64,000 nucleotides of DNA from Sphaerodactylus townsendi (taxonomy: Eukaryota), in the NCBI RefSeq assembly GCF_021028975.2, contig NC_059440.1, forward strand, positions 27,280,001 through 27,344,000, read 5' to 3'. Every line of letters begins with the position of its first letter. Position 1 is the stretch's first letter. Below, piece by piece: positions 27,586 through 48,355 of this stretch. Position numbers and translations under genes: made by a program. Below the pieces are notes generated by a model. The model saw only the letters and a list, made by a program, of their open reading frames with translations. It did no database searches and was not told the origin of the DNA.

Positions 27586-28006
27586 ACATAAAGCAACAGA
27601 CATGTGTGCTGCACTCAGATGAGGCTTAGTGGAGTTCATTCTTGGAAACCTTGTTATTGCATCCCGAAGTTAAGCTCTGCCACTTGCGCCTGCTGGCTGC
27701 TCAAACCCTGGACTAACTCTGCTAACAGCAAGCGATCACGTAACAGGTGGAACCTCAGAGAAGGGGCAAGTCGATACATGCCGGCCTGTTCATAACAAGA
27801 TAGCTCAGTGTCTTCTGTTCCGTCTTTCTGTTCTTCTAAAGTTAGTGTCTCCAGTCCTATGATACTCAGCCACACCTTTTTGCTGCAGAGCTGGCTGCCA
27901 GACCAGATCAGAGTTCAGGTTGCCAGCTAAACGCCTTCTCTGTGATTGCCCCAGGGCTTTGGAACCCATAGATTCGCCACGTGCCTCGTAGATTCTCCAC
28001 ATGTAG

Positions 28007-28302
28007 AGCAGCAGTGACGTAGTGGTTAAGAGCAGGTGCACTCTAATCTGGAGAACTGGGTTTGATTCCCCACTCTGCCACTTGAGCTGTGGAGGGTTAT
28101 CTGGTGAACCAGATTAGCCTGTGCACTCCAACAGATGCCAGCTGGGTGACCTTGGGCTAGTCACAGTTCTTCGGAGCTCTCTCAGCCCCACTTACCTCAC
28201 ATGGTGTTTGTTGTGAGGGGGGAAGGGAAAGGAGTTTGTCAACCCCTTTTAGTCCCCTTACAGGAGAGAAAGGGGGGATATAAATCCAACTCTTCTTCTT
28301 CT
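28007..28302 (+). mobile_element. Squam3-like SINE, full length
   Basis: Head, core and tail present. Confidence 0.88.
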
Positions 28303-35301: not shown

Positions 35302-35528
35302 ATGAGAGTCGAAGAAGCTGAGCTCCAGCGGAGGTGGATGGTGCTGGCCGAGGAGAGGACGCCAGAAGGACATCAGGCTGGGAACGTTTGCAAGGTGGAC
35401 TCCAAGGAGAAGACTTTGATCCTCGGTCCTGCCCAGGAGAGATGGGAGGAGCTCCATCGAGCTACCCAGAACAGCAACGTTTACCTGGTGAAGCAACTCT
35501 TACAGCAGGGAGCAGGGACCGAGTGCAG
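35302..35528 (+). CDS. ANKRD65: Ankyrin repeat domain 65, coding exon 1
   Basis: MRVEEAELQRRWMVL...LVKQLLQQGAGTECR resembles the human N-terminus (ELRWMEL...LVTQLLRQGASVEER). Phase-2 donor AG|GTGTGG. Upstream acceptor TTTGCTCCTAG ending at 35251 implies a non-coding exon further 5'. Confidence 0.85.
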
Positions 35529-36090
35529 GTGTGGAAAAGGCAGGTGTATTACTACCATCTCTGCTAGCAAGAAGATGGGGCGAGTCTGGGCTTGGTGGTA
35601 GGTTGTCGACCAGTCGGGAATTTGATTTAGCCCAACTGGTAATATTGTGTTTTGTCCAATGATTGATATCAGGGACACTAAAAGGCTCCATTAGATGATG
35701 GCTCTTGTGAACACCGTTCCCTCAGCGTGGCTCTTGCCCCATTCTTCTGGGAAGTGGGAAAGGCCGTTGTCCAGTAGGGCTTGAGGTTAGCAGCGGTTCC
35801 TACCTTGAAACAGCTGCTACTAGAGGAAGGGTCAAGCTGTGAACCTCGGCCTCATGCCAAAGATAGAAGTTAATGGGACCATTTTGGTTTGATGTTGACG
35901 ACACTGCACACAGACACAATTGTGGACACAGAGGAAACACCTCTGCTCATCTCTTGCCTTCAAAACCCCATTAGTCGGTTGAGACGTGACACATAGACAT
36001 AACTGCACATGTGTCTCTCTGCAAGTTTGTAGAGAGAATACCACGGAATCGAGTCACTTTAAGCCGCGTGTAGAAACACTTTTATTTCTT

Positions 36091-36389
36091 GAGAGCCAGC
36101 GTGGTGTGGTGGTTAAGAGCAGGTGGATTCTAATCTGGAGAACCGGGTTTGATTCCCCACTCCTCCAACTGAGTGGCAGAGGCTTATCTGGTGAACCAGA
36201 TGTGTTTCCGCACTCCTACATTCCTGCTGGGTGACCTTGGGCTAGTCACAGTTCTTGGGAACTCTCTCACCCCAATCTACCCCAGAAGGCGTCTGTTGTG
36301 GGGAGAGAAAGGGGAAGGAGTTTGTAAGTCACCTTGAATCTCCTTACAGGAGAGAAAGGTGGGGTATAAATCCTAACTCTTCTTCTTCT
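36091..36389 (+). mobile_element. Squam3-like SINE ending 14 nt before ANKRD65 exon 2
   Basis: Full-length copy whose (CTT)n tail merges with the acceptor pyrimidine tract. Confidence 0.9.
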
Positions 36390-36403
36390 CCAACTCTTTC
36401 CAG

Positions 36404-36953
36404 GGATGAGAATGGCTGGACCCCTTTGCACTTGGCTTCCTTGAATGGCTACGCCACTCTGGTCAAATTCCTCATCCAGCGTGGCGCAGTGGTCCATGCC
36501 CAGAACAGAGCTTCCTATACACCGTTGCATCATGCGGCTTGGAGTGGCCACACCCAAGTGGCAGACTTCCTCCTCACTCGGGGCACGCCGGCAACTGTGG
36601 CAACCAAAGGAGGCTTGACCCCGCTACACTGTGCAGCCGCCAACGGGCACATCCTGATGGTCGAGCTGCTCTTACGGCAAGGGGCAGATATTGCCGCTGT
36701 AGATGCCAGCCGATGGACTTGCTTGCACTGGGCAGCTGCCAACAACCAGCTGCACATCGTGGACTTGCTGATATCCCAGGGTGCTGGTCCAGATCTCGGT
36801 AGCGAGGGCGGAGTTACACCGTTACACACAGCAGCCGAGGCGGGACGAATCGAAGCTCTGCGTCTCTTGCTCGATAAGGGAGCCAACGTGGACGCTCAGG
36901 ATGGCTTGGGAAGGACTCCCCTTTCCATTGCTTCTAACAATGGCAACCAGGAG
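36404..36953 (+). CDS. ANKRD65: Ankyrin repeat domain 65, coding exon 2
   Basis: Tandem ankyrin repeats (GWTPLHLA, YTPLHHAAWSGH, GLTPLHCAAANGH, WTCLHWAA, GVTPLHTAA). Acceptor TTTCCAG at 36403, donor GAG|GTAAGG. 550 nt, phase 2 to 0. Confidence 0.93.
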
Positions 36954-37004
36954 GTAAGGCTGCAAATCCCCCCTGCACAAATGTTATCTACATATTACAT
37001 TTGT

Positions 37005-37637: not shown

Positions 37638-38072
37638 GTTGTGAAATTGCTCCTCCAAGCCAAGGCAGACGTGAACATCACCGACCACTACGGCTGCTCG
37701 GCTCTCCACAAAGCTGCAACGGCCGGACACCTGCCCGTCATCTGCCTGTTGGTAGGCGATAGCACTGCTGGAGTGAATGAAAGGGACGGTCAGAATCTGA
37801 CCCCGTTGCACCGAGCGGCCGGCTGCGGTCATGTCGACATCACCCGCTGCCTCCTGGACCACGGAGCTGACGTCAACGCAGCCGGGTGGCTCGGCAAGAC
37901 CCCGCTACACCTGGCCGCGGAAAAAGGACACTATCCTGTCATGGATCTTTTGCTAACCAAGGGAGCGGACCACACACTCAGATCGTGGTGGAAAGAAACC
38001 GCCAAAGAGCTACTGTCTGAGCGGCCCAGTTCTGGAGGCCTTACTGGTCAAAGGATTGTTGGGACCCCCTAG
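37638..38072 (+). CDS. ANKRD65: Ankyrin repeat domain 65, last coding exon
   Basis: Acceptor TCTCTCTTTAG. SALHKAA, LTPLHRAA and GWLGKTPLHLAAEKGH...HTLRSWW match the human GWLRKTPLHLAAERGH...PTLRTQW. TAG at 38070-38072. Total CDS 1212 nt (403 aa). Confidence 0.93.
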   Translation, partial: VVKLLLQAKADVNITDHYGCSALHKAATAGHLPVICLLVGDSTAGVNERDGQNLTPLHRAAGCGHVDITRCLLDHGADVNAAGWLGKTPLHLAAEKGHYPVMDLLLTKGADHTLRSWWKETAKELLSERPSSGGLTGQRIVGTP

Positions 38073-47915: not shown

Positions 47916-48355
47916 GGGGTAGAAACAACATGAAGGATTTGTATTTTATGTGCCTTTTAATCACATGTTTCACAGCAATCACTAATAATAATAATAAGGG
48001 ATTGGATTTAAACCCCACTTTTCTGTTCTATAAGGGATAGAAACAACATGAAGGATTTATATTTTATGTACCTTTTAGCACTCACTAATAATAATAAGAG
48101 TTTGGATTTATACCCCACTTTTCTATCCTGTAAGGGGTAGAAACAACATGAAGGATGTATATTTTATGTACCTTTTAGTCACATGTTTCATAGCAATCAC
48201 TAATAATAATAAGAGTTTGGATTTATGCCCTAACCTTTTGTCCTGTAAGGGGTAGAAACAACATGAAGGATTTGTATTTTATGTGCCTTTTAGTGACAAG
48301 TTTCACAGTGATCAATAATAATAACGGTTTGAATTTATATCCCACCTTTCTGTAA
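47916..48355 (+). repeat. Tandem repeat, 4 copies of a 100-118 bp unit
   Basis: AGAAACAACATGAAGGAT starts at 47921, 48039, 48139 and 48254. Confidence 0.9.

Follow-up and report, generated by a model that had tools for sequence, protein, structure and literature searches.

The ANKRD65 locus and its SINE

The window analysed here is a stretch of 64,000 nucleotides from the genome of Sphaerodactylus townsendi (contig NC_059440.1), and its forward strand carries a gene that is, judging by its sequence, a probable orthologue of ANKRD65 (Table 1). The protein searches for this gene were carried out exon by exon. The translation of exon 2 matches the Pfam Ank family with E = 5e-48, and its best named relatives are the ANKRD65 proteins of Latimeria (56%), Pseudonaja (59%) and a bat (51%). 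Residues 30-62 of exon 1 align with residues 74-107 of the bat ANKRD65, and exon 2 starts from residue 110; the two positions in between (108-109) are filled without a gap by an unaligned Cys and a split Arg codon. The phase fits as well, since the last two bases of exon 1 (AG) and G36404 together form this Arg codon. Exons 1 and 2 thus abut on the bat protein, which fits an acceptor at 36403 and not one located upstream. Orthology is indicated by the named matches, the ankyrin repeats and the common exon boundary. The end of exon 2 was corrected to 36953 with the 5′ splice site listed in Table 1.

Table 1. Coordinates of the ANKRD65 coding exons, the SINE and the elements of the exon 2 acceptor in the window
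Feature	Position	Strand	Description
ANKRD65 exon 1, coding part	35338..35528	+	ATG at 35338; 5′ splice site CAG/gtgtgg at 35528/35529; from sequence and tblastn
ANKRD65 intron 1	35529..36403	+	875 nt, GT-AG; the SINE accounts for 299 nt of its length
TTTAT (A36084)	36081..36085	+	only yUnAy in the rebuilt pre-insertion acceptor; likely native branch point
Squam3B-like SINE	36091..36389	+	sense, 299 nt, full length as judged by the heads of other copies, (CTT)n tail
SINE 3′ hairpin (L2-type)	36329..36362	+	predicted in both the MFE and the centroid structure
CTCCTTACAG	36340..36349	+	SINE-internal acceptor-like site and rival motif CTTAC; in nearly all window copies
TCCTAAC	36371..36377	+	derived T36374; candidate branch adenosine A36376
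Pyrimidine tract	36378..36401	+	22/24 pyrimidines; SINE tail 36378-36389 and native 36390-36401
Native intron end	36390..36403	+	14 nt, CCAACTCTTTCCAG
ANKRD65 exon 2	36404..36953	+	550 nt, five ankyrin repeats; 5′ splice site GAG/gtaagg
ANKRD65 exon 3, coding part	37638..38072	+	to the TAG stop

A full-length SINE ends 14 nt before exon 2, as had been reported from the letters of the sequence alone. For its assignment, the (CTT)n tail and the L2-derived 3′ region that mark the Squam3B family were both found. The tail at 36378-36389 is a CTT-type pyrimidine run in which the CTT units follow TCT, as in the published consensus end AAACTCTTCTT. A (CTT)n tail is also present in most copies of the window and is listed for the Squam3B family in Table 1 of PMC7983390. 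The 3′ 70 nt of the SINE, the part that was compared, match the printed Squam3B consensus with a local score of 52 and an identity of about 80%. At the other end of the element, no tRNA was called by ARAGORN in 36060-36420, and the head carries GTGGTGTGGTGGTTAAGAGC, which is box-A-like by eye. For heads of the Squam3B family, no clear tRNA species can be assigned (PMC7983390). Without the tail, the body measures about 283-287 nt (36091 to 36373/36377); reported lengths without tail are 238 nt for Squam3B and 267-271 nt for Squam3B3, with an 11-nt insertion as diagnostic feature of Squam3B (PMC7983390). Due to the longer body and the head without an ARAGORN tRNA call, 'Squam3B-like' is the safe name for this element. 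No clear target-site duplication is evident around 36091-36389; such duplications are rare in the family, which comprises 260,000 copies in Gekko japonicus (PMC7983390).

By BLAST, about 19 Squam3B-like copies or fragments with 78-92% identity to the element at 36091-36389 were found in the window, corresponding to roughly 8% of the 64 kb. At least two subfamilies are present among them, which can be told apart around alignment columns 85-150 (CTCTGCCACTTGAGCT... versus CTCCTCCACCTGAGTG...). A preference of the family for CTT-rich targets was considered and is not supported, as the 5′ flanks of nine other full-length copies in the window are not pyrimidine-rich. Two further repeats were observed. 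In all four runs, the contig depth over the stretch 35899-36016 of intron 1 ranges from thousands to tens of thousands, which points to another moderately repeated element upstream of the SINE. A tandem array at 47986-48351 repeats every 100-115 nt; its units, about 2-3 in number, include the tail end of an antisense SINE (AAGAGTTTGGATTTATACCC), and it resembles the SINE-derived satellites of scaled reptiles (PMC10702118).

Compared with the consensus of its subfamily in the window, the SINE at the acceptor carries 17 substitutions (7 of them transversions) and one deletion, and is thus about 6% diverged. Its differences are unevenly distributed: 14 of the 18 cluster in 36255-36338 (84 nt, 17%), compared to 1.8% in the first 164 nt and 2% in the last 51 nt. 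This could reflect patchy constraint, conversion or a consensus affected by subfamily variation.

The acceptor of exon 2 and its counterparts in relatives

The acceptor AG is located at 36402-36403 and the last AG upstream of it at 36357-36358; 36359-36401 is free of AG. CTAAC (36373-36377) is the only yUnAy motif in the AG-free last 45 nt of the intron, and the ancestral tail with A contains none. The adenosine A36376 lies 27 nt from the G of the AG. Both this distance and the lack of an intervening AG had been stated correctly in the earlier note, and CUAAC, named there as the optimal branch sequence, is the best yUnAy motif in the AG-free zone. The same note had taken the (CTT)n tail of the SINE as the pyrimidine tract, which applies to one half of the tract (36378-36389); the other half (36390-36401) is native. 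For A36376, the sequence features of a U2-type branch point were found together, namely a yUnAy motif suited to pairing with the GUAGUA of U2, the distance, the AG-free gap and the pyrimidine tract downstream. Its position falls within the 19-37 nt from the 3′ splice site that, according to a figure cited in PMC7951965, hold 90% of human branch points.

The acceptor before the insertion was rebuilt by joining the 5′ flank of the SINE to the 14-nt remnant, resulting in an AG-free zone of 31 nt. A36084 in TTTAT, the likely native branch point, was 20 nt from the AG in this arrangement and is now 319 nt upstream with 25 AGs in between, in violation of the AG-exclusion rule. The sequence and this reconstruction support the claim that the SINE sits inside the acceptor and has pushed the likely native branch point about 300 nt away. 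Since the native yUnAy motif lies behind 25 AGs and CTAAC is the only such motif in the AG-free zone, the branch point can with good confidence be placed in the 3′ end of the SINE. With a more modest degree of confidence, the adenosine used is expected to be A36376 or A36375. Duplexes of the candidates with U2, calculated with RNAduplex, had tiny, out-of-register energies and did not separate the candidates.

Contigs of relatives were collected at 88% likeness, a setting that also admitted paralogous SINE contigs by the hundreds of thousands. One contig each of organism D, whose intron is about 3% diverged, and of organism E, at about 10%, connects exon 2 via the 14-nt flank to the SINE; they reach back to 36344 and 36286, respectively. 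Differences inside the SINE were below the threshold for listing in D and E, and the comparison is based on the extent of the match and on total mismatch counts. In the contig of organism D, three unlisted mismatches and three gap letters (probably one 3-nt indel) are assigned by elimination to about 36344-36403. Since the insertion is common to D and E, it is older than those splits and was tolerated, and the 6% divergence of the SINE copy fits an insertion before the splits. In exon 2 of two relatives, 10 of 18 differences are at third codon positions (p = 0.04), from which it follows that the exon is under some constraint. By these sequences, the acceptor has long been functional with the SINE in place.

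Apart from these, the exon-by-exon protein searches recovered a single genomic sequence, L001 (a Logan contig of SRR31508491). It comes from a distant squamate, with 71% nucleotide identity in exon 2 and an unalignable intron 2. L001 has the same exon boundary, AG/GGATGAGAA, and the last 13 nt of its intron are similar to those of the window (GAACCTCTTTCAG versus CCAACTCTTTCCAG). A segment upstream of the exon matches the 3′ consensus of Squam3B with a score of 26, compared to a maximum of 24 in 2000 shuffles; against the window's own SINE copies, the match of the upstream region is not significant (p about 0.07). As in the window, the body of this SINE would end 25-26 nt ahead of the exon; this position was obtained by placement beyond the local alignment and not by alignment itself. 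In the place where the tail should be, L001 contains the yUnAy motifs TTGAC at -23 and CTGAT at -19. Its SINE-like end (L001:1-87) stems either from a separate insertion at this acceptor or from an ancient one that both lineages share. The age of the window copy, given by its 6% divergence, argues for independent insertions, which would be a striking coincidence of position. It was also considered whether the 5′ flank in the window (35991-36090) holds an older SINE remnant orthologous to that of L001, and this was rejected for lack of significant similarity.

The T at 36374 and the choice of branch point

For the comparison of the SINE tails, an alignment of 15 of the about 19 window copies was combined with a search of the whole window for the pattern AAATCCWAAY, which gave 13 sites with 1.1 expected by chance. 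Among the 12 tails other than that at the acceptor, ten read AAATCCAAAC (AAAC) and two AAATCCAAAT (AAAT), and none has a T; one further copy (28005-28302) reads AAATCC-AAC. The consensus end of Squam3B is printed as AAATCCAAACTCTTCTT, also with an A at the position of T36374 (PMC7983390, supplement). Given the A in 12/12 other tails and in the published consensus, T36374 is derived. The reading of TCCAA(A) in other copies and TCCTAAC in this one, on which the earlier note had built, is thereby confirmed. Its description of the change as private holds for the window; with more than 10^5 copies per genome, recurrent A>T changes at this site, giving TCCTAAC, are expected elsewhere by chance.

A sequencing error, which the note had listed as a possible refutation, is contradicted by a Logan contig of run X1 (organism A, the same species). 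This contig has a depth of 86, spans 36361-37000, carries the T and differs from the window only at 36644, so that T36374 is not a slip of sequencing or assembly. The contig breaks at 36361, for which another locus with the T-bearing 30-mer or a heterozygous site at 36360 are possible causes.

TCCTAAC agrees with the yeast branch sequence UACUAAC at 6 of 7 positions and the ancestral TCCAAAC at 5 of 7. Branch sites of vertebrates are degenerate and often multiple, and the ancestral CAAAC may for this reason have worked.

The folding of a 115-nt segment yielded a z of -3.5. In the predicted hairpin, A36346 of the motif CTTAC is placed in a 3-nt loop and the four AGs at 36348-36357 in stems or a 2-nt bulge; TCCTAAC falls into an unpaired loop of 11 nt in the MFE fold. 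According to this model, the hairpin at 36329-36362 sequesters the rival signals TTACAG and CTTAC. The MFE fold also pairs a purine-rich tract of the SINE (36299-36320, GGGGAGAGAAAGGGGAAGGAG) with 36382-36402, a stretch made up of (CUU)n tail and native pyrimidine tract. This complementarity of purine tract and tail is carried by every copy of the SINE family, and such a predicted pairing could hinder the binding of U2AF and modulate the accessibility of the tail.

The course of events that we favour, with moderate confidence, is that the 3′ end of the SINE took over the acceptor of exon 2 and that T36374 is an ordinary later substitution, either selected or neutral by luck. By retrotransposition, a Squam3B-type SINE inserted itself, sense-oriented, in the acceptor's pyrimidine tract, landing between the probable native branch point (A36084 in TTTAT) and the last 14 nt of the intron. 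This insertion predates the split from the two related species and was tolerated. Since then, the acceptor would run on the 3′ end of the SINE, with the (CTT)n tail and the native 14 nt as its pyrimidine tract and with the SINE hairpin hiding the internal acceptor-like site TTACAG and the motif CTTAC. Its branch point would fall within the AG-free final 45 nt, with A36376 (or A36375) of TCCTAAC as the most probable position. The T at 36374 arose after the insertion by ordinary substitution and improves the match to U2.

The earlier note had gone further and called the A>T change a compensatory mutation, which would here mean a positively selected one that rescued the splicing of exon 2 after the displacement of the native branch point. 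The change does create an optimal CTAAC at an ideal distance in a tail whose AG-free part was ancestrally devoid of yUnAy motifs. That such insertions can be costly is illustrated by dog SINEs at -15, -35 and -9, which cause exon skipping. Furthermore, the final 51 nt of the copy carry no change other than T36374, compared to 14 changes in the preceding 84 nt, which is suggestive of constraint with numbers too small for a test, and L001 also has yUnAy motifs (at -23 and -19) in the expected tail. On the other hand, the T is one of 17 substitutions, seven transversions among them, in a copy that is about 6% diverged. Eight different single changes would create a yUnAy motif at 15-45 nt from the AG and, at about 2% per specific change, the neutral probability of at least one of them is about 0.15. 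In addition, the insertion must have been viable when it became fixed, before any later mutation. The data are thus compatible with chance and do not support a compensatory mutation, and we regard this explanation as unlikely.

There is a small probability that the branch point is A36346, 57 nt from the acceptor, which would make T36374 irrelevant and require that the nearby AGs are bypassed as too close or paired. Its motif CTTAC is the second yUnAy of the SINE's 3′ end, belongs to the conserved CTCCTTACAG and is a yUnAy in almost every copy, and the AGs at 36348-36357 follow only 2-12 nt downstream. However, the predicted fold pairs both flanks of this adenosine and leaves it in a 3-nt hairpin loop, its distance is outside the 19-37 nt range as cited in PMC7951965, and the AG at 36357-36358, about 12 nt off, could compete.

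The same conserved segment offers an acceptor of its own (TTACAG, 36344-36349), and measurable use of it would mean that exon 2, which the earlier note took as constitutive, is not simply so. Splicing to the AG at 36348-36349 would add 54 nt (36350-36403) and hence 18 codons, in frame and without a stop; the YAG/G context and the nearby CTTAC would also favour it, and the result would be an isoform with a SINE-derived coding extension of exon 2. Against this speak the weak pyrimidine tract, the burial of the AG in the predicted hairpin and the bat ANKRD65, which has no insertion at this junction, and the chance of such an isoform is accordingly rated as slim.

A branch point outside the SINE, either A36084 or another site upstream of 36091 or the conserved CCAAC of the flank (A36393), is very improbable: distant branch points do exist in vertebrates and the AAC in the 14-nt flank also occurs in L001, but the 25 AGs from A36084 to the acceptor break the AG-exclusion rule, and A36393 has no U at -2 and, at 10 nt, is closer to the AG than nearly all mapped branch points.

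Comparison with known SINE insertions and splice signals

If the SINE 3′ end serves as the acceptor as proposed, the locus illustrates that native splice signals can be replaced instead of destroyed when an element contributes a pyrimidine tail and a near-consensus branch motif of its own. A more general idea, to which we give a rather low probability, is that the 3′ ends of Squam3B are portable 3′ splice-signal cassettes which land in acceptors repeatedly and are kept. Such a cassette would consist of an AG-masking hairpin, an A-rich pre-tail that is one mutation away from CUAAC, and the (CUU)n pyrimidine tail. If true, two squamate lineages would have received a SINE at this ANKRD65 acceptor independently of each other, insertions of this type would be present at several more acceptors of the genome, and selection would later sharpen the branch point of the tail. 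The density of SINEs is very high in this gecko-type genome, and the ANKRD65 case is at present a neat but unproven single example. Confirmation of A36376 and of a genome-wide excess of branch-creating changes in acceptor-proximal SINE tails would turn this genome into a natural system for the study of splice-signal turnover.

Within its own family, the element is closest to Squam3B and Squam3B3 of Gekkota and Lacertoidea (PMC7983390), with which it has the (CTT)n tail, the L2-type 3′ hairpin and the consensus end AAATCCAAAC in common. Few target-site duplications and a very high copy number are further likenesses, and the body of about 283-287 nt is unlike that of Squam3B3 with its 267-271 nt.

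SINEs that land a few nucleotides in front of an exon count among the classic disease mutations, since branch point and acceptor become separated. In the dog, SINEC_Cf insertions at the acceptors of FAM161A (c.1758-15_-16ins238, at -15), HCRTR2 (-35) and PMEL/SILV (-9) lead to exon skipping, with a shift of the putative branch site by more than 300 bp in FAM161A (PMC3976383). The geometry is nearly alike, with a SINE of about 240-300 nt at 9-35 nt before a coding exon (here at -14) and a putative branch point pushed more than 300 nt away. In contrast, the dog insertions are recent, polymorphic and pathogenic, whereas that in ANKRD65 is common to species up to about 10% diverged and precedes an exon with third-position-enriched substitutions in relatives. 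A further difference is that the ANKRD65 SINE is sense-oriented and brings a (CTT)n tail and a branch-like motif with it. The case looks like a fixed, long-tolerated insertion with the geometry of a disease SINE before a conserved coding exon.

The second group of known systems is the exonisation of transposed elements. New or cryptic exons are known to obtain branch points, pyrimidine tracts and 3′ splice sites from Alu, MIR, LTR and L1 elements, and branch-like motifs abound in MIR-type CORE SINEs, which are relatives of Squam3 (PMC7951965, PMC7969005). As in these exons and pseudoexons, the element in ANKRD65 would provide the branch point and/or the pyrimidine tract, and single point mutations in the element tune the strength of the splice signals in the known cases. 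Unlike there, the signals replaced here would be those of a pre-existing, conserved coding exon and not of a new or cryptic one, with the AG and the final 14 nt still native. Splice signals derived from transposed elements are already known, and the ANKRD65 case is their tolerated counterpart at a pre-existing coding exon.
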